Below, piece by piece: positions 17,739 through 52,759 of a stretch of 64,000 nucleotides of DNA. How positions within the stretch are numbered: the stretch's first letter is position 1; each line of letters begins with the position of its first letter. The notes beneath the pieces were generated by a model that worked only from the letters and a program-made list of their open reading frames with translations, was not told the DNA's origin and did no database searches. The stretch lies in the NCBI RefSeq assembly GCF_032444005.1, contig NC_091283.1:42842001-42906000 (forward strand), in the 5' to 3' direction. The translations under genes were made by a program, and so were the position numbers. This stretch comes from Ranitomeya imitator. Lineage: Eukaryota.

Positions 17739-17757
17739 ATGCGCCCTACAAGAGCAG
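17739..17757 (+). CDS. IFNL: IFN-lambda exon 1 (mini-exon, MRPTRA plus the first base of D)
   Basis: First ATG downstream of the expected TSS. Donor GTGAGG at 17758 joins the acceptor TTTGCAG|AT ATG at 17839/17840 in frame. Confidence 0.6.
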
Positions 17758-20700
17758 GTGAGGGGTCCGCACCGTCATACTGGACAATGCATTATAACCT
17801 TTGGGTATTTGGGCTTATTTTTGCCCTTCTTATTTGCAGATATGGCTGCCATCGTCAGAACTGTGGTTCCTCTTGCCCTGTATTTTGCGAGCCTGCAGGA
17901 CGTGGCCGAGGGTCATCCGATCCAGAATCACTGTCATATGTCTAAATATAAAAAGATGCAACCGAGCGCCATGTCACCGGCCCGAAAACTCCAGAACTTA
18001 CAGGTGAGTGGAGATCAGGGGTTGGAATGAGGGTGCGAAACGGACGGTCAACGAGGTGCAAGTCCCACATAACTGTGATGTCCATAGACGGCAATGGCGG
18101 ATACTTTTTTTAGGAATTCACCCGGGACCCCCCTCTATATGGGGGGCTGCTAACAAGCTGGAGAGATCCTGTATAACCCTTTTTTGCAATGGCCCCAAGT
18201 AATTCTATATTTCCCCTGTCTAGACGGTTGCAGTGGACAATGATTCCCAGGATAAAAATTGGGGTCTCGAGGTGAATCCCTGGGATTGCTAGTGATAAGA
18301 AAATCCCTATAAATGTGCGATCAGCCCCCAAAAGTAGATTATAAAAAAAATCCCATTGTGTAGATGACCCTCTGAGAACCCGAGTACTTGTGTATAATGC
18401 ATGGAAGGACATCGGACGTGTTTATCGGATCTGATCCTCGCTCTTTTCCCGCAGCACAAGAAGTCGTCGTGCCACCACGGCCTCCGCCTGAAACACTTCG
18501 AGGACTGCGATATAAAGGTAAGGAGCTTAATCTTCGTCCATTATACCAAATGTGTAGCAGGACCCCCGACCACTATAATGGCGACTTGTACGGGTGCGAC
18601 GGCGATCCCTACACCCTCTATAGCTATGCTCCAATGTCCAGGGAAGCTGAGGACCTAAGAAATGGCTCCCGGGGCAGGGATCCGGGTCTAGACAGAGTTA
18701 TTATATAGTCAGGATTCAAATAACAACATTCCCACCGTGAGCTTTTGGGGAGTTTTTGACGCTGCAAAATTTCTGCACCTATTGTGTAAATTCAGTTACT
18801 CGCGGTTTTTTGCTGCATTTTTCACTGCTGTTTTCTATCTTCTTTTTGATGCTGCGATTTTTTTAATCTTTTTTCGGTGTGTCATGCTTTAAGGAAAGTG
18901 GCTTTGTTTTTGATACTTCCTGGTATGCAAATGAATATTTACCATATTTTTCAGACTATAAGACGCACTTTTTTCTCCAAACAATTTGGGTGCAAATGGG
19001 GGTGCGTCTTATAGTCTGAATATACTTACAAATAGTGTGGCGGCAGCAGGAGTCGGGTGATTCTGCGGCGGTCCCGGACCGTGCAGGGCGACAATCACAC
19101 TCCCTTACCAGGCTGGTGTGTTGGGTCTCTTCGGCGCGCTGTGGTGCGGGGTGGCTCCTCCGGCATTTTGTGAAAGGCCCTCACATATCCATTGCTGCGA
19201 TGCGGTGGCCTCCGGGAAAATGGCCGCTGGAGGCCGGCGCATGCTCACATTTAGATCTCTTGGGATGAGATCTCATTGCCGAGATCTCAATCTGAGCATG
19301 CACCGCCCCCCGGCGGCCATTTTCCCGGAGGCCACCGCATTGCAGCAATGGATATGCCGCGGCCTTCAAGCTTTCACAAAATGCCGGCGAAGCCCCCCGA
19401 ACCATAGAGCGCCGAAGAGACCTTCCGCACCAGCCTGGGATGGAATTTCCTGGAGGCCACCGCATTACAGCAATGTGCGAGGGCCTCAGGGCTTTCACAA
19501 AATGCCGAGTACCGCCGAACCGGTATGGGATGATGGGAGTCATATTGCCGGACCACCGAACACTTCCTGTGACCACGCTCCACCAGCGCTGCCGATCCCC
19601 CCCGGTAAGCTGAATTTGGAGTGTAAGACGGACCCCCATTTGACACATTCATTTTTTTCCCCTGTTTTCCTTCTGAAAATTTGTGGTGCGTCTTATAGTC
19701 CGAAAAATACGGCACCTGCAGATTTTCCGCATCTAATATAAGTCTATGGGGAAAATCTGCACGGAAAACTCAGCGTACCGCAACAGAAGTTGACACGCCA
19801 CAGATTTGAAACATGCACCGCGGGACAGTTTACGCTGAGTAAAGAAGAAGCGCAACGGGCGGGAGATTTCTATAAATCCCATCCACTTTGCTGGAGCCGC
19901 AGCAAAAACACGCACCAAAAATAGTTGATCAGATTTCTGATACAGAGCTCCAAACCCTCTGCATTAGTAGAACATGCATTAGCAGAAGAAGAAAAAAAGT
20001 TGAATACCAGCACCAGCCACTAGAGGGAGCTTCAATGTTTCACATTGACTTCAATATTAAGGCAGTAAATAAGCTCCCTCTAGTGGCGGCCACGGGTATC
20101 TAATATGTCATCTTTAATTCTATTGCTAGTTGCAAAATGAGTTAACTGAGAATCCATCAGTGAGCTCAGTTTGTAACTCATTTCGACTTATGACCAAAGA
20201 CCACATCAAAGTTAAATGTGTGGGGAAAAAAAGAGCTTTGTAAATGCTAAAGGGTGCAAAATATTTACTGAATCCCAGTTAAAAAATGATCTTTAGCTGA
20301 AAGTAACGGCATTTAAGTAAAATAAAATGTAATGTCCCTAGAGGTGGACAAACCCTTTAAGATGATAAGTAAGTGGTAAATGTTCCATAGTGTGTCCTAA
20401 TTATTGCATATGTCTCCGCAGGGCAGAGACAGACTGATGCTCACCTTATACCGGGTGTCACTGGTCGTCAACGTGCTGGAAAATATGAACAAGACCGAAC
20501 TCGTAAAGCAAAATCTGAAAGCTTTCTCCATTCTCGAGTCGGACCTGATGAATTGTGTAAGTGCAGAAACATTGCAGATATCTCTCGTACAGGTGACCTA
20601 GACAAGGTGTATGGAATAAGCTTGCTCTTGGAGTGAATTTTTTTGTGTGCTCAGTGGCTAAGAGCCCCATTCTGTGATGTTAGTCAATCAGTCCCTGGTG

Positions 20701-23700
20701 CCTCGTGTTCTTGTGACCGATATTAGTGCTTCGGTCCATAGTGTCCAGTGATTTCACACCATAGTCACTGGCCTCTAAGTTATGGTGACCCAGTGCGTGG
20801 TGTTCAGTGGGTAAGTGCTCCAGTCCATATTGTCCAGTGTTTTAACACCCCTAGTCCAAAGTAATATGGTGTCTCAGTCTCTGGTGTTTAGTAGTTAAGT
20901 GCACCTGCCCATAGTGTCCTGTGTTTTACTACCCTTTTCCTCAGTTTCTGGTGCCATGGTGACCCAGTGCATGATGTTCAGTGGATAAGTGATCTGGTCC
21001 ATAGTATCCATAGTTTCAACACCCTGGATCCTAGTGTCTAGTGTCATGGTGACCCACTCTGTAACATTCAATGGATTAGTGTTCCACTTAATAGTATCTG
21101 GTCTTTCATTGCCCTTGTCCCTGGTGTCTAGTGTTGTGGCGAGCAAGTCTAGTCTTTAATACTCAGTGGCTAAGTGCTCCAGTCCATATTATTCTGAGCT
21201 TTAGTACCATGGTGTCTAGTGTTATAGTGAGCCATTCTTCATTGTTCAGTAGATAAATGTTCCATAGTAATCAGCCCTGATGTTTAGTGTCATAGTGATC
21301 CAGTGTCTGGTGTTCAGTGAATAAGTGCTCTGGTCCAGTACGCCCCAGTACTAGATCCTAGTGTCTAGTGTTATGGTGACCCACTCTGTAACATTCAATG
21401 GATTAGTGTTCCACTTAATAATATCAGGTCTTTCATTGCCCTTGTCCCTGGTGTCTAGTGTTGTGGTGAGAAAGTCTAGTCTTTAATACTCAGTGGGTAA
21501 GTGCTCCAGTCCATATTATTCTGAGCTTTAGTACCCTGGTGTCTAGTCTTATTATAGTGAGTCATTCTTCATTGTTCAGTAGATAAATGTTCCATAGTAA
21601 TCAGCCCTGATGTTTAGTGTCATAGTGATCCAGTTTCTGGGGTTCAGTGAATAAGTGCTCTGGTCCATAGTACCCCCCAGTACTAGATCCTAGTGTCTAG
21701 TGTTATGGTGACCCACTCTGTAACATTCAATGGATTAGTGTTCCACTTAATAGTATCTGGTCTTTCATTGCCCTTGTCCCTGGTGTCTAGTGTTGTGGTG
21801 AGAAAGTCTAGTCTTTAATACTCAGTGGGTAAGTGCTCCAGTCCATATTATTCTGAGCTTTAGTACCATGGTGTCTAGTGTTATTATAGTGAGCCATTGT
21901 TCAGTAGATAAATGTTCCATAGTAATCAGCCCTGATGTTTAGTGTCATAGTGATCCAGTCTGGTGTTCAGTGAATAAGTGCTCTGGTCCATAGTACCCCC
22001 CAGTACTAGATCCTAGTGTTTAGTGTTATGGTGACCCAGACTCGAAGATTCGGTGGATAAATGCTCCAGTTCATAGTATTTAGTGTGTCACTATCCTTGC
22101 CCCTGGTGTCTAGTGCTGTAGTGAGCCAGTCTTCAGTGGATAAGTGCTCCAGTTCTTAGTGTCCTATTTTTAATTACATAGTCCCTGGTGTCTGTTAATC
22201 AGTGGATTTGTGCTTTGGTCTAAAGTATCCATAGTTTCAACTCCACAGACCTTCTTGTCTAATACTATGCTGACCTGATACCCTGGTGGCCCAGTGGGTA
22301 CGTGCTCCAGGTCATAGTGTTCAGAGTTTTAACATTCTAGTCCCTCGTGTATAGTGTAATGGTGACAGTCTCTGTTATTTTGGTGAATAAGTGTTCCGGT
22401 CACTAGAACCCATGGTTTTAACACCCTAGTCCTACTCTGGTACCTGCTGTGTGTCGTTGGCTTTCCTGCCCCCCTCTGGCATTGAGCATGTCCTTTCCTG
22501 TCTGACATCCCCATACACATCAGATTGGTGAGGTTGGCCATCAGTAATCCCATCTGCAGTTTTTCGTTAATCCTCTATGTTTTTACCGATACCTCAGAAA
22601 GCTTTTATTGATATGAGTAATGCACGGGTTTGAGTGACGTTGGTTCCTTGTCATTTTGGAGAAAGTATCATTTTACCATCTTTATTCTTTTCCAGGAAAT
22701 GGAGAAATCCCCAGAGTTGAAGAACTGTCGGCATCATCTCAAGCAATACAGAGAGACGGTAAATATTTACTGCCGGAAACGGAGGGAACTCCGCACATCG
22801 GTTTAGTCATTACCTAGCATTCCCCACGTTGTACGATTCCTCTGTTATTCCTCTTAGAAAAATGTATGAAAAAATTGACAATTGGGTGTTACCGTTCCCC
22901 TCTTTCCAAAGGGGCGTGTCCCTACACAGTCTGATGTCAGCACTCACTGAACAGCTATAGGAACATGCTACCAAGTGGTAATACCCTTATATCAATTTAT
23001 TCATATTTAGGGGGAGGGATAACAGAGAAGAACTGGTCTATCTTGGAGAAGATTTACTAAAATAGTCCTTTTTAAGCTTAGTCATAGATATAAGTTTGGG
23101 TTTTTTGAAGCCTTTTTAAGAGTTTTTGAGACAAGTGTCACCCAAGATGACTGGTGGAGACAGATAACCATATAATATGTATGAGAACTGTCATTTCGAC
23201 AGTCAGAAGTTTACATTAGTGGGTGTCTGAATGCCAAGACCTCCACCGATCTGTGAAATGAAAGGGCAGAAGTGTTCAGCCAAGCTATGCTCTCCTTCAA
23301 GGGGACATGTCACTTGCCATAAATATGTAATTTTTTTTATCTCGTGTAAGTGCTGCTGTTCTCCTGAATCCGGCGATGTTTTTCTCTTGTTCCTGCTCCT
23401 CTCCGTTCCTGAGATATGGCCTCTTCTTCTCTGTATATACTCTTGCTAGCCAACTGGGCGCGTTCCTTAAGAATATGCCCAAAAAAGGAGTTGGTCACCA
23501 CGCCCACCTGGAAAAAAAAGAGCTTTATACACAGAAAAGAGGGGGCCATATCTCAGGAACGGAGAGGCGCAGGAAGAAAAGAAAAACATCGCCGGATTCA
23601 GGAAAACGGCGGCTTTCACACCAGGTAAAAAAATTACCTATTTCTGACAAATGACAGGTTCCCTTTAACACAGATATTCTATCGAGTCCATCTTCAGTTC

Positions 23701-24189
23701 AGAGGAGTGGAGGGCACAGTGATCGGTGAGGGTCCGAGATCTCCGCGGACACCCACCATTCAAAGCTTCTGACACGTCTCTGATATGCAAAAAGGTGTTT
23801 TTTGTCTTTTTCTTTAATTTTTACATGAGTGGAAATTGTGCAAAAATGTTGCCACTTTTCCGCCATTTCTGTGGTCAAAATCCGCACGACTTATTCACTT
23901 TAATATGGGCATGAACCTAATAAATGAAAAATTAATTGAAACTATCATTATTAACGCGCTTCTTGTTTTCTCCTAAATTTAGGTGACCCAAGAGTGTCTG
24001 AAAAATGACGTTCTCACCAGCCTGGTTTGGATTTTAACAGAAGATATGGGGCAACTGATTCATGGGGGCCAAAGCCCCGAAGAAATGATAAAGGCAGATC
24101 TCCATGTCACTGCCAAACCACCTCCTGCAAAGAAACAAAAAGGCAAAAGGAAGAAGAAAGGCAAGAAAACGAAAAAGAAGGCCGACTGA
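17739..24189 (+). CDS. IFNL: Interferon lambda (type III IFN), 6 coding exons, 216 aa, with a polybasic C-terminal extension
   Basis: Exons 17739-17757, 17840-18003, 18455-18517, 20422-20556, 22696-22758 and 23983-24189. All junctions are GT-AG and the four core introns are phase 0, as in class II helical cytokines. Motifs align with IFN-lambda: CHMSKYKKMQP (cf. CHIGRFKSLSP), RDRLMLTL...DLMNC, RHHLKQY (cf. LHHWLHRL), ECLKNDVLTSLVWILTEDM (cf. GCLEASVTFNLFRLLTRDL). It sits next to SYCN, NCCRP1 and PAK4. Confidence 0.88.
17840..18003 (+). CDS. IFNL: IFN-lambda exon 2 (signal peptide and helix A)
   Basis: (D)MAAIVRTVVPLALYFASLQDVAEGHPIQNHCHMSKYKKMQPSAMSPARKLQNLQ, followed by donor GTGAGT. Confidence 0.88.
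18455..18517 (+). CDS. IFNL: IFN-lambda exon 3
   Basis: Acceptor CTCTTTTCCCGCAG, HKKSSCHHGLRLKHFEDCDIK (63 nt, phase 0-0), donor GTAAGG. It carries the conserved AB-loop Cys. Confidence 0.8.
18942..19712. mobile_element. Non-autonomous pogo/Tc2-like DNA transposon with an internal foldback, in IFN-lambda intron 3
   Basis: TIRs CCATATTTTTCAGACTATAAGACGCAC / GTGCGTCTTATAGTCCGAAAAATACGG, with TA on the left flank. An internal inverted repeat spans 19160-19387. Confidence 0.75.
20422..20556 (+). CDS. IFNL: IFN-lambda exon 4
   Basis: Acceptor TGTCTCCGCAG, GRDRLMLTLYRVSLVVNVLENMNKTELVKQNLKAFSILESDLMNC, donor GTAAGT. It contains an N-K-T glycosylation sequon. Confidence 0.88.
20690..22330. repeat. 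Degenerate tandem repeat with three higher-order copies of about 330 bp, in IFN-lambda intron 4
   Basis: The block CTAGTGTCTAGTGT.ATGGTGACCCACTCTGTAACATTCAATGGATTAGTGTTCCACTTAAT recurs at about 21030, 21358 and 21690. Confidence 0.8.
22696..22758 (+). CDS. IFNL: IFN-lambda exon 5
   Basis: Acceptor TTTATTCTTTTCCAG, EMEKSPELKNCRHHLKQYRET, donor GTAAAT, phase 0-0. Confidence 0.8.
23299..23668. mobile_element. Palindromic T2/Kolobok-type MITE
   Basis: Long internal inverted arms (CTGAATCCGGCGATGTTTT...GAGATATGGCC / GGCCATATCTC...AAAACATCGCCGGATTCAG), ending CAGGTTCCCTTTAA. The same family occurs at about 37793 and 52760. Confidence 0.75.
23983..24189 (+). CDS. IFNL: IFN-lambda exon 6 (helix F plus basic tail)
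   Basis: Acceptor TTTTCTCCTAAATTTAG, then VTQECLKNDVLTSLVWILTEDMGQLIHGGQSPEEMIKADLHVTAKPPPAKKQKGKRKKKGKKTKKKAD*. Confidence 0.88.
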   Translation: MTQECLKNDVLTSLVWILTEDMGQLIHGGQSPEEMIKADLHVTAKPPPAKKQKGKRKKKGKKTKKKAD

Positions 24190-24559
24190 AAACATCCCCA
24201 CGGGAAGACAAAAAGAACAATTCCAGCTGTCCAAGCAGCCAGAATTATTTTATAAAGGAGGCCGAACTCTGTTGCTATGGGTGACATATAGTGTTGCTAA
24301 GGCTGACGATGTCCCACATTTTATAGGCCTAATTTTTTAAATTGTCTCCGTGTTGCCCCCTAGCAACCAATCACAGCTTATCTTTCATTTTGAAAACAAC
24401 TTTGGTTAAATGAAAGCTGCGTTGTGATTGGTTGCTATGTTTACCATCAAAATCAAAAGTTGGATGATATACAAAAATGAACAAAGGTCGTGAAGACGTT
24501 ATATTTCCGCTATCGAGCTGTGAAGGACACGATATTTCACTCAGTGACTTTTATATTAA

Positions 24560-24960
24560 TGATATGTATTTATTAATAATAATAATTTAATTGTTGAGTT
24601 AGGATGCCATTTCCTAACACAATGTATTTATATATAATATATTATAATGTATTAAATATATTTATATTTTTATGTATATCTATTATAAAAATTAAATTAT
24701 TAGAATTTTTCATCAGTTGTTTGAATCTTGTTACCAGAAGGGGAAATGGGGCCGGATATTTTGTAAAATGTTTTTGGTGTGAAAAGTTTTGTAGTTTCCT
24801 GATATTTGAAAGGATCGTCAAGTGTAGCAGCATTTATTATAGGGGAGCGTCTTTTTCTGAGAGTCAAAAACTTCCATTTTCTCCTAGCAGAAAACACTTT
24901 AGGAATCAATATTTTTCTCTGGATGTTTGTACACCGGAAGCTTTTATTTAGTTATTTATT
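24560..24960 (+). promoter_or_regulatory. AU-rich element cluster in the presumptive IFN-lambda 3' UTR
   Basis: ATTTA pentamers at 24568, 24585, 24626, 24660, 24832, 24946 and 24954, plus ATTAAA at 24651. The transcript end is unknown. Confidence 0.5.
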
Positions 24961-30091: not shown

Positions 30092-30220
30092 NNNNNNNNN
30101 NNNNNNNNNNNNNNNNNNNNNNNNNNNNNNNNNNNNNNNNNNNNNNNNNNNNNNNNNNNNNNNNNNNNNNNNNNNNNNNNNNNNNNNNNNNNNNNNNNNN
30201 NNNNNNNNNNNNNNNNNNNN
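30092..30220. other. Assembly gap (129 N)
   Basis: Run of N characters. Confidence 1.
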
Positions 30221-33075: not shown

Positions 33076-34634
33076 CACTGCTAAAAAAAAATAAAGGGAG
33101 CACTAAAATCCCACATCCTAGACATCACTGAAATATTTCAGTTGTAAATCTTTATTCATTACATAGTGGAATGTGTTGAGAACAATAAAACCTAAAAATA
33201 ATCAACGTAAATCACAACTAATGTCCCACGGAGGTCTGGAGTTGAAATGATGCTCAAAATCAAAGTGGAAAATGAAGTTACAGGCGGATCCAACTTAAGT
33301 GGAAATGCCTCAAGACAAGGAAATAATGCTCAGTAGTGTGTGTGTGGCCTCCACGTGCCTGTATGACCTCCCTAGAAAGCCTGGGCATGCTCCTGATGAG
33401 GCGGCGGATGGTCTCCTGAGGGATCTCCTCCCAGACCTGGACTAAAGCATCCGCCAACTCCTGGACAGTATGTGGTGCAAAGTGATGTTGGTGGATGTAG
33501 CGAGACATGATGTCCCAGATGTGTTCAATCAGATTTCTGGTCTGGGGAACGGGCAGCCAGTCCATAGCTTCAATGCCTTCATCTTGCAGGAACTGCTGAC
33601 ACACTCCAGCCACATGAGGTCTGGCATTGTCCTGAATTAGGAGGAACCTGCCAGCCGCACCAGCATATGGTCTCACAAGGGGTCTGAGGATCTCATCTTG
33701 GTACCTAATGGCAGTCAGGCTACCTCTGACGAGCACATGGAGGGCTGTGCGGCCCTCCAAAGAAATGCCACCCCACACCATTACCGGTCATGCTGAAGGA
33801 TGTTGCAGGCAGCAGATCGCTCTCCACGGCATCTCCAGACTCTGTCATGGCTGTCACATGTGCTCAGAGTGAACCTGCTTTCATCTGTGAAGAGCACAGG
33901 GCGCCAGTGGCAAATTTGCCAATCCTGGTGTTCTGTAGCAAATGCCAAGTGTCCTGCATGGTGCTGGACTGTGAGCACAAGCCCCATCTGTGGGCATCGG
34001 GCACTCAGACCATCCTCATGGAGTTGGTTTCTAACCGTTTGTGCAAACGCATGCACATTTGTGGCCTGCTGGAGGCCATTTTGCAGGGCTTTGGCAGTGC
34101 TCCACCTGTTCCTCCTTGCACAAAGGCGGAGGTAGCGGTCCTGCTGCTGGGTTGTTGCCCTCTTACATCCCCTTCCACTTCTCCTGGTGTACTGGCCTGT
34201 CTCCTGGTAACGCCTCCAGCCTCTGGACACTACGCTGACAGATACAGCAAACCTTCTTGCCACAGCTCGCATTGATGTGCCATCCTGGATGAGCTGCACT
34301 ACCTGAGCCACTTGTGTGGGTTGTAGAGTCCGTCTCATGCTACCACGAGTGTGAAAGCACAACCAACATTCAAAAGTGACAAAAACGTCAGCCAGAAAGC
34401 ATTGGTACTGAGATGTGGTCTGTGGTCCCCACCTGCAGAACCACTCCTTTATTGAGGGTGTCTTGATAATTGCCAATAATTTCCATCTGTTGTCTATTCC
34501 ATTTGCACAACAGCATGTGAAATTGATTGTCAATCAGTGTTGTTCCTAAGTGGACAGTCTGATTTCACAGAAGTTTCATTTACTTGGAGTTATATTCTGT
34601 TGTTTAAGTGTTCCCTTTATTTTTTTGAGCAGTG
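33076..34634 (-). mobile_element. Near full-length Tc1 DNA transposon (1559 bp)
   Basis: TIRs of about 30 bp, CACTGCT(A/C)AAAAAAATAAAGGGA(G/A)CACT. TA TSDs at 33074-33075 and 34635-34636. Confidence 0.93.
33278..34338 (-). pseudogene. Tc1 transposase (DD34E type), frameshifted
   Basis: HTH region [20 protein letters not shown] and catalytic motifs [17 protein letters not shown] and NLIEHIWD. The frame breaks at 33781 (HDR* / MVWGG). Confidence 0.88.
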
Positions 34635-40591: not shown

Positions 40592-40729
40592 TCAGTCTCG
40601 TAACTGAGCAAATAGTGTGCTGTCTGCCACTCGCGTTCGGTGGAATCCCAGGACTGACAGATCTTTACTCTTGTGCAAAAAGTGAACATACCGCAGACCT
40701 GGTCCATAAGACTTGAAGATATGGGAAAC
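40592..40729 (-). CDS. NCCRP1: NCCRP1 exon 6
   Basis: VSHIFKSYGPGLRYVHFLHKSKDLSVLGFHRTRVADSTLFAQLRD*, with acceptor TATGTCTCAG. Confidence 0.93.
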   Translation of the reverse strand, partial: VSHIFKSYGPGLRYVHFLHKSKDLSVLGFHRTRVADSTLFAQLRD

Positions 40730-43700
40730 CTGAGACATAGAAGTGTCATTAGATAGTTAGGGGACCCCATCTGTTGGATCTCCAATACGATATTTAAAAC
40801 ATATTCAGTCTAAATTAGAAACCGTCTTTAACGAGGAATCTGCCACCAGGTTAACATTTTTTCAATTTTTCTATCTTATTTTATTCTTGTTTTTTCCCGT
40901 GAGTGTTCTGGTTTTCGTTTTATTAAAATCCGCCATACGGTTCCAGAGATATGGGTTTTTTTATTTAGTGCAAATTTTTATGGTCTTTACGAGGAGGCGT
41001 GGCTCACAGGACAGAACAGTCTAAACACACGCCCCAGAGGATCCTGTGAGCCACGCCTCCTTAGTAACAACCCAGAAATAATGTACCAAATAAAACCTCC
41101 CATATCTCTGGAACCATACAGCGGAAGTTAAAAAAGAATAAAATGAAATACACAGGCAAGCATCAGGAATAAAATAAGAGCAAAAACTGGTTATTTCTGA
41201 ACTTGTGACGGGTCACCTTTAAGAATTTAAATTTGACGGTTTTGTAGGATTATCCCTTTTCATGGTTCCTTTCGGTATTTGGGCTACTCACCGCGTTCCA
41301 TCCTTTTGGTTCCCCGCTCATGTCATTTTCTGGGGTCAGGTCCAACTGAGCTAAAATAGTTTTCTTGTCCTCTGCCAGCAGCTTGACATGGAGCTCATAC
41401 ACTTGTTTGTGGAGTTTGCTGTCTTCATACCTGTATAATAAACATTTGACATGAGGCCAGGATGCCCGATGGGTCTACTTACAAAATTATCGTGGGTATT
41501 TTGTCATCCACATCTTCCGTCCACGACACAGACAGTGCCACTCTCGCATCAGATATTGACCCGGTCACCCCTGTCATACACGGCAGAGTGCAACAAAACA
41601 ATAGACAACCCTGGCACAATAACATCACTAAAAGGCTCCGGCAAGTGTCCAGGGTTGCAGATCGGTGTTGGAAGAAAACACATTTGCAAGATGATTTCAC
41701 TGCACTGAAACAAGCAACACTCACATTAAATTCTGCTCACACCTCTACTAAACAGGCCTACTTCACAACCCTTGTATCTTCCTTATCCCAAAATCCCAAA
41801 CAGTTATTCAACGCTTTTAACTCCCTCCTCCTCGCACCACTGCCCCCTACGACCTCCCTCATCTCTGCTGAGGACTTGAAAAATAAGATCGACCAAACAA
41901 GTCTTTATTGTTCAACTATCACATACCAGACCAATGCCCTTCCCCATAACCTACCCCTCAAACATCATTGAAGGAGAGCTTACTCGTCTCCTCTCCAAAT
42001 CACACCTCACCACTTGTGCACTTGACCCCATCCCATCCTACCTCCTCCCCAACCTCACCACCACACGTACCCCACCCCTAACCCATCTCTTCAACCTATC
42101 TCTAACTTCTGGCACCTTCCCTTCTGCTTTCAAACATGCCACAATCACACCTATCCTCAAAAAGCCAACCCTGGACCTGACCGTTATGTCCAGCTATCTC
42201 CCCATATCACTGCTACTATTTGCTTCAAAACTCCTTGAGCAACACATCCACGCTAAACTTTCTTCTTGCCTCTCATTTAACTCGCTTTTCAACAACCTAC
42301 AATCTGGCTTCCTTCTCATCACTCCACTAAAACTGCTCTGACCAAAATTACTAATGACTTACAGCCAAAGCTAACAGACAATTCTCTACAGTCCTCCTTC
42401 TAGACCTGTCCTCTGCTTCCATCACAGTTGACCACTGCCTCCTACTACAGATCCTTTTTTCCTCTGACGTCAAAGACTTCTCCCTATCCTGGATCTCCTC
42501 ATACCTTACTATCTGCACATTTTGCGCCTACCAGTCCCACACTACCTCCTCATCCCACCCTCTCTCTGTTGGCATCCCTCAAGGCTCTGTCCTAGGACCC
42601 GATTCTTCTCTATCTATACCTTTGGCCTAAGACAACTCAAAGTCCTATGGCCTCCAGTACCATCTGTACGCTGATGACACTCCGTCTACCTCTCTGGCTC
42701 AGATGTGTCTCTGATGTCTCTCTGCTGTCCAGAATCCCAGAGTGTCTATCAGCCATATCCTCATTCTTCTCCTCTCCTTTCTTCAAGCTCAATGTGGACA
42801 AATCTGAACTAATTATCCTTCCTCCATCTCACGTATCTTCCCTACCTGATCTATCGATCTCAATAAATGACATCACACTTTCCCCAGTACTGGACATCCA
42901 CAGCCTCAGAGTAGCCCTCAACTCTGCCCTGTCCTTCAAACCGCACATCCAAGCTCTCGCCACCTCCTGTCGCCTCCAGCTCAAAAATATTTCCAGAATT
43001 ATTATTATTATTTATTTATATAGCACCATTAATTCCATGGTGCTGTACATGAGAAGGGGTTACATACAGAGTTATAGATATTGTTTACATTAAAAAAATT
43101 TAATGACAGACTGATACAGAGGGGAGAGGACCCGGTCCTTGCAGACTTACATGCTATGGGATAATGGGAAGAGACAGAAGGTCTGGGGTGCGGCAGCTCT
43201 GGCGGTGGTGAGGCAGCAGAATGGTTATTGCAGGCTGTAGGCTTTCCTGAAAAGGGGGGTTTTCAGGTTCCGTCTGAAGGATCAGAGGGTGGTGGATAAT
43301 GGGATGTGATGAGGCAGAGAATTCCAGAGGATGGGGGATATTCGGGAGAAACCTTGGAGGCGGTTGTGTGAGGAATGATAAGTGTGGAGGAGAGTAGGAG
43401 GTCTTGGGAGGATCGGAGATTACGTGAGGGAAGATATTGGGAGATTAGTTCAGGGATATAGGGAGGGGACATGTTGTGGATGGCTTTGTAGATCAGTGTT
43501 AGTAGTTTGAACCTGAGAGAAGACAGATGTATCACTCATGCGCTGCTGATATCAGTGAAGTCAGAACAGACCCTCAAACCTGTATAAATAAATGTTTTAA
43601 ATTCATTGACATCAGCAGCGCATGAGCGACACATCCGTCCTCTCTCTGTATTCATGTTCATCCTCTGTGACCGGCGGTATCTGTGCAGAAGCTGTTATAT

Positions 43701-48600: not shown

Positions 48601-51112
48601 ACATGATTGCTCTGAGCTATTATATGTTAAAAATGTGGGTAATATTCTGGACAACCATCCATGGTGGCCTATGCAACTTCTATATCGGCCAAGGAGAAGG
48701 TGCCCGACCCATGCATGGTGTGAGCCTGTGTAGGGCTCCCCTTCGGTAGGAACATTCTGGGGTAAAAGTGGATTGATGTATAGAACAGATCATACCTTCT
48801 GGATTTGGGCATTTCAGGAAGTTCCTTCCGAAGGGTTTTCTCTTATAGATGTCTTTCCAGTTGGCATGGTCTGGCAGGGCTATTGCCTTCTTCTGTAGAC
48901 CCCACTCCTTTTCACACAATTCTAACCAGCCCTGAGCCGTCTCCGGTTCCTTCTGCACTGGTGGTAGAAGATTTGCCAAGTTCGGAACTAGATTCGTCTG
49001 CGGCTCTTGTTTTTTAGGTTTCCATTTGGGTGGCTTTATTCCAAAAGTTGGTTCCTCTACAGCTAATGACACCTGGGACTGTTCCTGTTCCTGGACTGAT
49101 GTGATGGACTTTTCTACTTCTAGAGTTGTTTGCTTGGTGATCTCTTGGTCCTGAGATACCACATTGGACTTCTCCAGGTCAGGAGATGTGCTTTTAGGTT
49201 TCTCTTGCACCTGAGTTGTCCCTATAGACTTTTCCTGTTCCTGAGATGTCGATTTGGACTTCTCCAATTCCGGTACTCTTACATTAAGCTTCTCTTCTAC
49301 CTGAGCGGTCACTTTAGACTTGTCCTGAGATGGCATTTTGGACTCCTCCTGATCATGACTAGTCTCTTTAGGCCTCTCCTGTGAAGTCTCTTTAGTCTTT
49401 TCCTGTTCCTGAGCAGTCACTTTTGGCTCTTCTTTTACCTGAGCAGTCACTTTCGGCACCTCTTTTACCTGAGCAGTCACTTTCGGCACCTCTTTTACCT
49501 GAGCAGTCACTTTAGCCTTCTCTGGTTCCTGAGCAGTCACTTTTAGCTCCTCTTTTACCTGAGCAGTCACTTTTGGCTCCTCTTTTACCTGAGCAGTCAC
49601 TTTAGCCTTCTCTGGTTCCTGAGCAGTCACTTTTAGCTCCTCTTTTACCTGAGCAGTCACTTTTGGCTCCTCTTTTACCTGAGCAGTCAGTTTAGCCTTC
49701 TCTGGTTCCTGAGCAGTCACTTTAGGCTTCTCCTGTTCCTGCGCAGTCAGTTTTGGCTCCTCTTTTACCTGAGCAGTCACTTTTGTCTCCTCTTTTACCT
49801 GAGCAGTCACTTTTGTCTCCTCTTTTACCTGAACAGTCACTTTCGGCTCCTCTTTTACCTGAGCAGTCACTTTAGCCTTCTCTGGTTCCTGAACAGTCAC
49901 TTTCGGCACCTCTTTTACCTGAGCAGTCACTTTTGGCTCCTCTTTCACCTGAGCGGTCACTTTAGCCTTCTCTGGTTCCTGAGCAGTCACTTTTGGCTCT
50001 TCTTTTACCTGAGCAGTCACTTTCGGCACCTCTTTTACCTGAGCAGTCACTTTAGCCTTCTCCTGTTCCTGAGCAGTCACTTTTGGCTCCTCTTTTACCT
50101 GAACAGTCACTTTCGGCACCTCTTTTACCTGAGCAGTCACTTTCGGCACCTCTTTTACCTGAGCAGTCACTTTAGCCTTCTCCAGTTCCTGAGCAGTCAC
50201 TTTAGCCTCCTCTTTTACCTGAGCAGTCACTTTAGGCTTCTCCAGTTCCTGAGCAGTCACTTTTGTCTCCTCTTTTACCTGAACAGTCACTTTAGGCTCC
50301 TCTTTTACCTGAGCAGTCACTTTAGTCTTCTCCTGATCCTGAGCAGTCACTTTCGGCTCCTCTTTCACCTGAGCAGTCACTATAGCCTTCTCCAGATCCT
50401 GAGCAGTCACTTTCGGCTCCTCTTTTAGCTGAGCTGTCACTTTAGTCTTCTCCTGTTCCGGAGCTGTCAGTGTCCGCTCCTCTTTTACCTGAGCAGTCAC
50501 TTTAGGCTTCTCCAGTTCCTGAGCAGTCACTTTCGGCTCCTTTTTTACCTGAGCTGTCACTTTCGGCTCCTCTTTTACCTGAGCAGTCACTTTAGTCTTC
50601 TCCAGATCCTGAGCAGTCACTTTCGGCTCGTCTTTTACCTGAGCTGTCACTTTAGCCTTCTCCTGTTCCCGAGCTGTCAGTGTCCGCTCCTCTTTTACCT
50701 GAGCTGTCACTTTAGACTTGTGTTGTTCAGCAGTCTCATTATGATCTGGTTTCTCAGCTCCTTTCAGATCTTCTTGCGCTCGTTTAGCTGCTCCTGGCTT
50801 CTCGGATGTCTCTTCTTTATGTTTCTTGTGTTTGCCAGGGTTCGCTTTGTCATTATCTTTCCTTTTGTGTTCTTCTAGTTTTCCATCTGTCTGGATTGTG
50901 TCTTTGTTTGTTCCCGGGGTCTCATTTTTAGATGGTATTTCTTGCTCCTCTGTCTCTTTTGCCAGGGGAGGGTCACTGTCTCCCTGCTCTTTCTGCCTTG
51001 GAGTCTCCACCTTTTCATTATTGTCGGTGGCTTCATTTACAGGATTCTTCCCAGCCAGCTTGGCATCCACCCTTGGGCCAACTTGCCCTTCTGGTGGTGA
51101 GCAGGCACTCAT
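40592..51112 (-). CDS. NCCRP1: NCCRP1 (FBA-domain protein, FBXO50), 6 exons, 953 aa, with a long N-terminal 10-aa repeat region
   Basis: Exons 51112-48796, 48502-48428, 46252-46156, 44738-44643, 41430-41292 and 40729-40592, all GT-AG with compatible phases (2862 nt in total). Motifs FGRNFLKCPNPEG, PLETLGNFSGW, WCVKEQLLDL..EGLW.ELLD, YELHVKLLA and VSHIF..YGPGLRYVHFLHK..RTRV.DS match NCCRP1. It lies between PAK4 and SYCN. Confidence 0.93.
41292..41430 (-). CDS. NCCRP1: NCCRP1 exon 5
   Basis: (W)YEDSKLHKQVYELHVKLLAEDKKTILAQLDLTPENDMSGEPKGWNA, with donor GTGAGT. Confidence 0.93.
41450..44570 (+). mobile_element. Decayed L2-clade LINE (ORF2/RT and 3' end), split by insertions, filling NCCRP1 intron 4 in antisense
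   Basis: Broken ORF2 pieces include QPWHNN, CALDPIP, FPSAFKHATITPILKKP, PQGSVLGP, YADDT and ISRI / RPFL...LIISRLDYCN. The tail ends AAATAAATAATAAC at about 44570. Confidence 0.9.
43000..43515 (-). mobile_element. L2 3' fragment inserted in opposite orientation inside the larger L2
   Basis: The reverse complement encodes RFKLLTLIYKAIHNMSPPYIPELISQYLPSRNLRSSQDLLL and ends in an (AAT)n tail at 43000-43015. Confidence 0.85.
44643..44738 (-). CDS. NCCRP1: NCCRP1 exon 4
   Basis: (S)WCVKEQLLDLCSEGLWPELLDSYQPDIYVLD(W), with acceptor TTTGCAG and donor GTGAGT. Confidence 0.93.
46156..46252 (-). CDS. NCCRP1: NCCRP1 exon 3
   Basis: (G)NFSGWQISSEEIPVDRSNIPPGVVVCYLPVY(S), with acceptor CTTTTCAG. Confidence 0.9.
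46375..48060. repeat. 35-bp minisatellite (GAGAAGTGATCTCCACAGAACAGGAAGTGACTACT), about 47 units, in NCCRP1 intron 2
   Basis: The left half is homogeneous. The right half is diverged and includes a block duplication of about 388 bp (markers at 47161 and 47549). Confidence 0.96.
48428..48502 (-). CDS. NCCRP1: NCCRP1 exon 2
   Basis: (G)LSTTQPPPQEVFDPPPEKKPLETL(G), 75 nt, phase 1-1. Confidence 0.9.
   Translation of the reverse strand, partial: VYPPHSLLHKKYSTHPQRRSPWRH
48796..51112 (-). CDS. NCCRP1: NCCRP1 exon 1 (2317 nt)
   Basis: ATG at 51112 with an in-frame TGA two codons upstream. The frame stays open through the repeat into WLELCEKEWGL...WKDIYKRKPFGRNFLKCPNPE, followed by donor GTATGA. 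Confidence 0.88.
49410..50720 (-). repeat. Coding 30-bp tandem repeat (KVTAQVKEEP / KVTAQEPEKA variants), about 44 units
   Basis: Plus-strand unit TCTTTTACCTGAGCAGTCACTTTCGGCTCC and variants, all frame-preserving. Confidence 0.95.
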
Positions 51113-52759
51113 TCTTCAGTCTTCTCTCCCTCTCTCTGTCCTTCCAGGTGGTTTTAAGGTTCTGCTCCTCCTTCCCAGAGAGAAGACTCAGAGTGTAGGT
51201 GTGTGATGAGTAGTGTGGAGAGGAGGGAGTGCCGGCCAGAAGGCAGAACAAGCTGCTCATTGTGCTGCCAGGTATCCTGTGCAGATGACAGCAGGGACTC
51301 CCCTCCGATCATTCATTCTGGGTGCACCTTGTCATCAGAGACGCCATTGGCAGCTCCATCGCCATTCACGTGCATTCAGCCCCTGGGACAGGTTTGGTCA
51401 TCACCTTCAGAACGCAGCAATTTTACACAACTTCTTTCTCTTCACTTCTCCCCATATGGCCAAGTTGTATTCTTCATTGGCATCGTATTTTAAGAATTTT
51501 ATTTCAGTAGCACTCACCGAGCCATATAAGCGTATATTCAACTTTTTGATATTTTTCTTTACCTCCCCATCCCCCCAAAAAGTTGAGTAATTGTGTTTCT
51601 TTGTCGTTTTTCTTTTTTCTTTTTATGGTGTTCCTTATCTACGATAAAGTACATGATTATATTAAAGCTTGGGACTTTATTCGCAATTATTTGCACTTTT
51701 TTTGTTATTATTTCCAACACTGAAGGACCTGTGAATATGGGGAAAAAGGGTGATGTTTGGGGTATTTTTCACTTGAATTCTGCCCTTATTTTTCTTTTTT
51801 TAAAAATTAAAATAAATTATCCTACTTGGGGATATTATTGCGTAGATAACACAAAAGTTTTGCAGTGTTTAATGACAGCCACAGGACAAATAACAAACAG
51901 CCTGTTATGCCATTTGTACCTGGGAGGGTGGGGGCCATTATTAGACCACCATCCGCCACAACAACCCATCTGTGGCAAATGATCTAACAAGCTTGGATGC
52001 AATAGTCACTAATGATAGTGGCTCATTAGTTGGTTAAACACCAGGGATTGGAGTGATCTACAATCCCAGTCTTTACAGCAGATCAGAATTTGCAACTAGG
52101 GTCAAAGGGTTCATGGCCACCTGGGTCAGACTGACCCAGCCCTCCGGTTAACACCTGCTCTGGCAGTCATGGAGCCCAAATGGAATAGCCAACATTTTGA
52201 TATGGAGCTGACTTTGGAGGATTATAAAGAGAAATGTCCATTTGTTCCAAAGGTGGCACCACTGCTGCCCATCTGATAGAAACGAAGACAAGCTGCAGTA
52301 CCAGACACAGCCTGTGATGAACAGTGGCGCTGTCTCATTGGTAGGGTTGGGAAGCCTATTTTGTAGATGTTATAGGTCTTTCTAGTTTACACGATTCTCT
52401 TTAATATCAGGTTTCCAAGGGGATGATCGTAAATTGGGCAAAAATCTGTAAAAGGTATTTGCAATAGACACACCTGAGCAGCCATGTAGAGCCATATACT
52501 GCTAGGTGTGATTGTGTTCACAGCTCCAGAGCCTGTAACTCCTGTCCCCTCCCTGGTGACTCACTGACACTGTGCACTCAGGATCTGCTCTGCACATACA
52601 GAAGGGCCCATTGTACTTCTACTCTTCGGGCTTTTTCTTTTCCCCTTTCAGGCTACAAATATTGTACATTTATAGTACAAAAAGTTACCAACTTACCTGC
52701 TGGTGGTTATTGTACTTATCTTATCAGTAAACTAATTTATTTCATGCCGTGTCAAAAAG

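Follow-up and report, generated by a model that had tools for sequence, protein, structure and literature searches.

The window analyzed here, a 64,000-nucleotide (nt) stretch of the genome of the frog Ranitomeya imitator, contains at 17739-24189 on the forward (+) strand a gene of six exons that is intact and transcribed and encodes a type III interferon (interferon-lambda, IFN-lambda) of the secreted type. The encoded protein continues past helix F into a long polybasic C-terminal tail. Comparison with related proteins indicates that this tail is a clade-wide, selected C-terminal module on a type III interferon; the sequences themselves are public. Its function we infer mainly by analogy: the tail probably binds glycosaminoglycans, matrix or mucus and thereby would keep this barrier interferon close to where it is made.

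The initial annotation had described a frame that runs about 40 amino acids (aa) beyond helix F and ends in a 24-residue stretch with 14 Lys/Arg. Both observations hold: positions 24067-24189 (+) encode precisely 40 post-helix residues and a stop codon, and the 24-residue stretch begins at 24115. The tail consists of a 20-aa linker of mixed charge with a Pro run at its end (24067-24126), followed by a basic stretch of 20 aa that includes 13 Lys/Arg (24127-24186) and the TGA stop at 24187-24189. Such a composition is rare in this DNA, as among 45,308 stop-free 24-aa segments in the six frames of the 64 kb just three reach 14 Lys/Arg, all of them inside the tail. The core motif of the basic stretch is A-K-K-x-K-G-K-[RK]-...-K-K-x-K-K, and the tail of this protein contains a single Arg. 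The calculated net charge is about +17.7 for the mature protein (isoelectric point 9.7), +10.8 for the last 39 residues and +12.8 for the last 24. Across the tailed proteins described below, the net charge of the core ranges from -2 to +8 and does not exceed that of tail-less IFN-lambdas, which places the excess charge in the tail; a surplus of core charge like that of IFN-lambda4 was not seen. The tail is non-amphipathic, with hydrophobic residues at 2 of the last 22 positions (fraction 0.09). It lies outside the Pfam domain, because the match to that domain spans residues 36-170. It is also predicted to be disordered and to lie outside the folded core, with a predicted local distance difference test score (pLDDT) of about 55 from residue 176 to the C-terminus of an AlphaFold2 model. 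Ribosome stalling on a poly(A) track was ruled out, since A-runs reach no more than 5 here and 7 in relatives; long A-runs are missing because the Lys codons AAA and AAG are mixed.

The tail is transcribed. Contigs from four public sequencing runs of one study (X1-X4), which contain 6-10% of the gene-region words, were laid on positions 18440-24439. They show three GT..AG joints that fall exactly on modelled exon borders, 18517/20422 in contigs of X2, X3 and X4, and 20556/22696 and 22758/23983 in contigs of X1, X2 and X4; because of these spliced joints we take the contigs to be transcripts. In X1, X2 and X4 they cross the joint of exons 5 and 6 and then read through the tail and the stop codon. 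A 1177-nt contig of X2 covers exons 3 to 6 and stays collinear across the entire last exon and stop codon and for at least 250 nt into the 3' untranslated region (UTR), up to position 24439, after which it has 46 nt more. In the contigs of X1-X4 the last exon is free of internal joints, and a splice form lacking the tail was not seen. The initial annotation had raised the possibility that complementary DNA would reveal another 3' exon or stop; instead, the contigs use the modelled ones. Differences from the window are found at 20520, where A>C produces the Asn of the R. variabilis protein, and at two UTR positions, and one run has a conservative Asp-to-Glu change in the linker while the basic stretch is encoded unchanged. 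The contigs therefore stem from a different individual or from a sister species. In addition, an intron-free mRNA contig of another species (L001) encodes a tailed homologue (P0008).

The gene itself was delineated with the help of an orthologue. A search with the start-codon exon returned one protein, the 216-aa NCBI model P0001 of R. variabilis (Pfam PF15177). Mapped back on the window, P0001 defines six coding exons, all bounded by GT-AG, that form an intact 651-nt open frame for a protein of 216 aa. The two proteins are 97% identical, with identical tails, 100% protein identity in the last exon and few residue differences in the other exons. Coding mini-exon 1 (17739-17757, 19 nt) consists of an ATG and six codons, ends in phase 1 at a GT donor and joins in frame to 17840; the N-terminal extension that it encodes agrees with the N-terminus of P0001. 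It is followed by five main exons of 164, 63, 135, 63 and 207 nt with phase-0 joins. Exon 2 (17840-18003, bounded by AG and GT, 93% identity to P0001) encodes a signal-peptide-like hydrophobic stretch, after which the mature protein begins, and helix A. A second in-frame ATG lies in this exon at 17842, giving two candidate starts: the mini-exon ATG used in the R. variabilis model, which adds seven residues, and ATG 17842, which would yield a more conventional signal peptide. Exon 3 (18455-18517, AG and GT sites) encodes 21 aa with two conserved Cys, exon 4 (20422-20556) 45 aa with the central helices, and exon 5 (22696-22758, AG and GT sites) 21 aa. The last exon (23983-24189) is preceded by a pyrimidine-rich tract and a ...tttag acceptor and is stop-free up to the terminal TGA. 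Its first part (23983-24066) encodes the 28 aa of the helix F region, including a conserved Cys and a Trp, and is 100% identical to P0001. The last exon starts with the same residue at all seven genomic loci compared (the window and six other frog genomes). A putative 3' UTR occupies 24190-24700, with ATTAAA signals at 24651 and 24691.

Several lines of evidence agree that the protein is a type III interferon. With Pfam IL28A (PF15177), P0001 scored 53 bits against a cut-off of 27. When single exons were searched, exon 4 was the sole one to match (E 2e-5, 25 bits, slightly below the 27-bit cut-off), and the last exon alone gave no Pfam match; a full-length orthologue was needed for family assignment because single exons gave just this sub-cut-off match. 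A profile of 35 family sequences searched against PDB found IFN-lambda3 (E 7e-42), IFN-lambda1 (3e-38) and, far more weakly, IFN-lambda4 (2e-11). The AlphaFold2 model has a mean pLDDT of 79.9 and a confident helical bundle at residues 40-175 (pLDDT 80-97). Its helices comprise residues 6-27 and then those of the mature part, including helices at 151-175, the helix F region, with high pLDDT. In a Foldseek search of PDB, the top eight matches were chains of IFN-lambda1, 3 and 4 (template modeling scores 0.67-0.74), followed by IL-22, at modest E-values of 4e-3 and weaker. Type III interferon genes have five main coding exons with phase-0 joints (PMC8863823), and the same arrangement is found here. 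The frog protein thus resembles the canonical IFN-lambda1-3 (IL-29/IL-28; PF15177; PDB 3HHC, 3OG4 and 5T5W) in profile, predicted fold and exon structure, and it shares their helix F, in which the conserved Cys is kept and the receptor-binding position is occupied by an aromatic residue. By this likeness it would be expected to signal through IFNLR1/IL10RB.

The C-terminus is where it departs from these proteins. Homologues were collected by a word-index protein search, which gave five more hyloid frog proteins, and by an exhaustive profile search of 1.84 billion representatives, which gave 23 relatives, and tail lengths were counted from the aligned end of helix F. The R. variabilis model has the same tail as the window, residue for residue. 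The tail motif is shared by six hyloid frogs, and nine columns of the basic stretch are invariant (one Ala, one Gly and seven Lys). In a maximum-likelihood tree built on core columns, with the tail columns excluded, the tailed proteins form one clade (support 100/99). All frog IFN-lambdas likewise form one clade (100/99), distinct from the caecilian and salamander sequences. Tails of 40-63 aa occur in 12 of the 13 members of the tailed clade, namely in Ranitomeya, Anomaloglossus, Engystomops, Eleutherodactylus, Hyla, Dendropsophus, Rhinoderma, the species of P0008, Discoglossus, Leptobrachium, Xenopus laevis (ANQ43345) and Pelodytes; their net charge is +9 to +16 in 11 cases and +3 in Pelodytes. 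X. laevis 'Type III interferon 1' (ANQ43344), also a member of the clade, ends 14 residues past helix F, before the basic stretch. It belongs to a pair of near-identical paralogues, the truncated P0011 (Type III interferon 1) and P0032 (Type III interferon 2), which has a 40-residue tail.

IFN-lambdas outside this clade have 0-24 aa after helix F, with a net charge of at most +3. They include a second clade of frog IFN-lambdas (Xenopus, Discoglossus, Bufo, Aquarana, Lithobates and Pristimantis) and the proteins of salamanders, a caecilian, turtles, alligators and a hamster. Extensions that are intermediate and non-basic are seen in salamander (24 aa) and caecilian (16 aa) proteins. The amniote proteins stop 4-7 residues past the aligned end of the helix, which bears out the statement of the initial annotation that mammalian IFN-lambdas end soon after helix F. 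The concern that orthologues of the window gene would do the same has been removed, as they keep the tail.

In the canonical proteins this short C-terminus forms a disulfide loop, and a C-terminal disulfide bridge after helix F has been named as a feature characteristic of type III interferons by Redmond et al. (PMC6640115). Our alignment shows no Cys pair after helix F in the tailed clade, whereas amniotes have C-x6-C there and the short frog clade has one Cys. We treat the disulfide as characteristic but not defining of type III interferons. Because the tailed proteins form one clade, a single gain of the tail on the frog stem suffices. Because Discoglossus and Xenopus each carry both kinds of protein, the duplication is older than the sampled living frog lineages. 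On these sequence comparisons, a duplication on the frog stem produced the tailed paralogue clade, in which the C-terminal disulfide loop was lost and an extension of 40-63 residues, predicted to be disordered, was gained.

The initial annotation had proposed a test of tail conservation and of the ratio of nonsynonymous to synonymous substitution rates (dN/dS). We used the coding DNA of eight genes, from seven genomic loci and one intron-free mRNA contig. The ratio of nonsynonymous to synonymous differences (pN/pS) was determined over three independent species pairs with a Fisher test, and dN/dS was pooled from pairwise comparisons. For the core, pN/pS was 0.39 (p 3e-17; dN/dS 0.27) and for helix F 0.34 (p 6e-5; dN/dS 0.33). 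The 18 codons of the basic stretch gave 0.33 (p 0.001; dN/dS 0.29), and the linker gave 0.65 (p 0.06; dN/dS 0.46). Judged by these ratios, the basic stretch is under purifying selection, with a constraint equal to that on the receptor-binding helix F, and the linker is looser. A tight basic end on a looser linker is what a flexible leash with a functional end would be expected to show.

Of the functions that can be considered for such a tail, we rank first the retention of the interferon by matrix or mucus, because IFN-gamma is the best precedent. In that cytokine, heparan sulfate is bound by four basic residues at the C-terminus, which have been conserved for 450 million years, and in mice this basic motif keeps the cytokine local and prevents lethal systemic toxicity (PMC9977683). 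The KRKR domain of IFN-gamma is likewise a basic extreme C-terminus outside the fold; its charge has been preserved as the remainder of the protein diverged, and a role as nuclear localization signal has been proposed for it too (PMC9977683). The frog tail shares the marks of such a basic cluster, with at least four C-terminal basic residues (13 Lys/Arg in the last 20) that are outside the fold and conserved in charge. There are differences too. IFN-gamma is another type of interferon with another receptor, its motif is of independent origin, and it has 4 basic residues (8 in human), compared with 13 of 20 in the frog tail. For IFN-gamma, the ability to bind heparan sulfate was demonstrated experimentally, whereas that of the frog tail is predicted from sequence.

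Chemokines offer a second parallel. CXCL12-gamma has a basic C-terminal tail, which in CXCL12 is added by alternative splicing. CCL21, as described in PMC9866948, is a small secreted signalling protein held on glycosaminoglycans by a long, disordered, Lys/Arg-rich C-terminal tail that resembles the frog one. The chemokines have an unrelated fold and another class of receptor, and the frog tail is a constitutive part of the last exon, in contrast to the alternatively spliced tail of CXCL12.

Retention could work as follows. The helical core would signal in the usual manner via IFNLR1/IL10RB, while the exposed polybasic tail would bind extracellular polyanions such as heparan sulfate, other glycosaminoglycans, mucus or polymers of the skin secretion. 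Tethering would keep the cytokine near the producing epithelium, setting its range and persistence and restricting systemic spread. Any affinity for the surfaces of microbes or for nucleic acids would then follow from this charge as a side effect, and it might add a direct antimicrobial effect. All in all, we consider it probable, with a confidence somewhat above even, that binding to glycosaminoglycans, matrix or mucus is the main role of the tail. A fuller scenario, to which we give slightly less than even weight, is that early frogs duplicated IFN-lambda and that one copy became a matrix- or mucus-anchored short-range interferon. In this scenario a polybasic leash replaced the disulfide loop, as an independent reinvention of IFN-gamma retention, and the tail might also bind microbes or nucleic acids at the permeable surface of skin and gut.

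Several points weigh against a selected retention module. The Pelodytes tail is rich in His, Arg and Lys and has a net charge of only +3, and the early end of X. laevis Type III interferon 1, ahead of the basic stretch, shows that the tail is dispensable in at least one case. The selection test covers 18 codons with synonymous sites near saturation. The contigs that support transcription come from one study, whose run records do not state that RNA was sequenced, and the signal peptide was assigned from hydrophobicity and the structural model alone. Any +13 peptide binds heparin in vitro, so that heparin binding by itself would be no proof of selected retention. Finally, the tail greatly exceeds the IFN-gamma motif in length and basicity, suggesting more than simple retention.

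The main rival to retention is direct host defence, in which the cationic cytokine or a fragment of its tail would kill or agglutinate microbes or carry nucleic acids; activities of this kind have been reported for mammalian IFN-lambda4, for IL-26 and for certain teleost type I interferons. The charge of the mature protein is close to the +18.2 of bactericidal IFN-lambda4 (PMC11536128), and the bactericidal activity of teleost type I interferons is due to cationic C-terminal peptides (PMC13411935, PMC9045357). Like the frog protein, IFN-lambda4, IL-26 and the teleost type I interferons are class II cytokines of mucosal barriers, and frog skin is an exposed, mucosal and microbe-rich surface. 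However, IFN-lambda4 carries its charge on helices B and E as an amphipathic surface (PMC11536128), whereas the frog core is ordinary, no more cationic than that of tail-less IFN-lambdas, and the charge is placed in a non-amphipathic tail. Published descriptions call IFN-lambda4 and the teleost peptide cationic as well as amphipathic or membrane-targeting. The initial annotation had suggested release of a cationic antimicrobial peptide at the multibasic sites, a proposal that has lost ground in both of its parts: a classical membrane-active peptide is unlikely because just 2 of the last 22 residues are hydrophobic, and furin-type release is unlikely because 11 of 12 tails, this one included, lack the motif R-X-[KR]-R. 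Moreover, interferons are normally produced in amounts far below antimicrobial concentrations. We therefore regard direct host defence as an unlikely main role.

A less probable role is the regulation of signalling. The tail could raise the on-rate to the receptor or co-receptor, or it could be a pro-segment trimmed by extracellular proteases or carboxypeptidases. It is joined directly to helix F, the main IFNLR1-binding helix, in which the conserved aromatic position is a Trp; the basic region of IFN-gamma has been proposed to aid receptor binding (PMC9977683), and runs of Lys/Arg are easy targets of trypsin-like proteases. On the other hand, a conserved furin site is missing, with the motif present in 1 of 12 tails, and the variability of the 20-aa linker speaks for a flexible leash and not for a docking element. 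Doubtful to a still greater degree is a nuclear localization signal of an intracrine or internalized interferon. The pattern K-[KR]-x-[KR] has four overlapping matches here and occurs in 11 of 12 tails, nuclear import is a suggested role of the IFN-gamma motif (PMC9977683), and amphibian interferons with weak signal peptides were reported by Sang et al. (PMC4928184). The pattern match carries little weight because any polybasic run fits it, a hydrophobic, signal-peptide-like segment is present at the N-terminus, and in vivo work on IFN-gamma found matrix retention as the role (PMC9977683). That the tail has no function and only reads through into an A-rich 3' region, or that it is an annotation artefact, is hardly credible: codons are A-rich (AAA/AAG) and one X. 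laevis paralogue has no basic stretch, but the tail is transcribed and spliced as modelled, is kept in one clade from Discoglossus to the hyloids, has invariant Lys positions and a pN/pS of 0.33 (p 0.001), and mixes AAA and AAG with no A-run above 7, so that conservation, selection and transcripts rule out a private read-through into an A-rich tract.

Type III interferons act at barrier surfaces, and their range is normally set by where the receptor is expressed. If retention by the tail is correct, tethering of the ligand would be a second way of confining IFN-lambda, parallel to the IFN-gamma motif. This would be relevant for amphibian defence against ranavirus and skin pathogens and for the engineering of locally retained interferons. 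The near-identical X. laevis proteins with and without the basic stretch provide natural material for a direct test. The tailed member of this pair, 'Type III interferon 2' (ANQ43345), was already public, deposited with Sang et al. 2016. In the papers on amphibian interferons and interferon evolution that were consulted, and in full-text searches aimed at such a tail, we found no mention of a C-terminal tail, its charge or heparin, and an earlier remark in Qi et al. 2010 or Grayfer et al. 2015 is possible.

The surroundings of the gene were also inspected. Two exons encoding an F-box associated (FBA) domain of Pfam adjoin at 40595-40756 and 41253-41474 on the reverse (-) strand (E 2.5e-11 and 4e-5). 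By its sequence this neighbour is consistent with NCCRP1, a neighbour of the type III interferon locus in human. The type III interferon locus is also linked to SYCN/SUPT5H. The same strand carries, upstream of the FBA exons, a stop-free frame of 811 aa that is rich in Lys/Glu and has no Pfam match (48683-51115 (-)), and together they would fit an NCCRP1-like gene with a long repeat exon. A type IV interferon (IFN-upsilon) was considered as an identity of the window gene and ruled out, since sequence and fold match IFN-lambda and the neighbour is an FBA-domain gene. IFN-upsilon is also encoded by a multi-exon, phase-0 interferon gene and also occurs in frogs, but it is found at the ADARB2-PFKP locus and has a type I-like C-terminus (PMC8863823), both unlike the window gene.

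In the intron regions 18840-20240 and 23240-23640 of the interferon gene, contig depth summed to hundreds, compared with about 4-7 on exons, with sequences 90-95% alike and many odd joints. These piles look like expressed high-copy repeats in introns, outside the gene proper. Within the intron between exons 4 and 5, at about 20700-22100 (+), one short open frame is repeated at 20989, 21361 and 21693 with a spacing of about 330-370 nt, which points to a tandem repeat array. A run of N at 30092-30220 is an assembly gap or a masked stretch. Between the interferon gene and the FBA exons, an open frame at 33781-34533 (-) encodes helix-turn-helix domains of a Tc3-type transposase (PF01498, E 9e-14) and is a remnant of a Tc1/mariner-like transposon.

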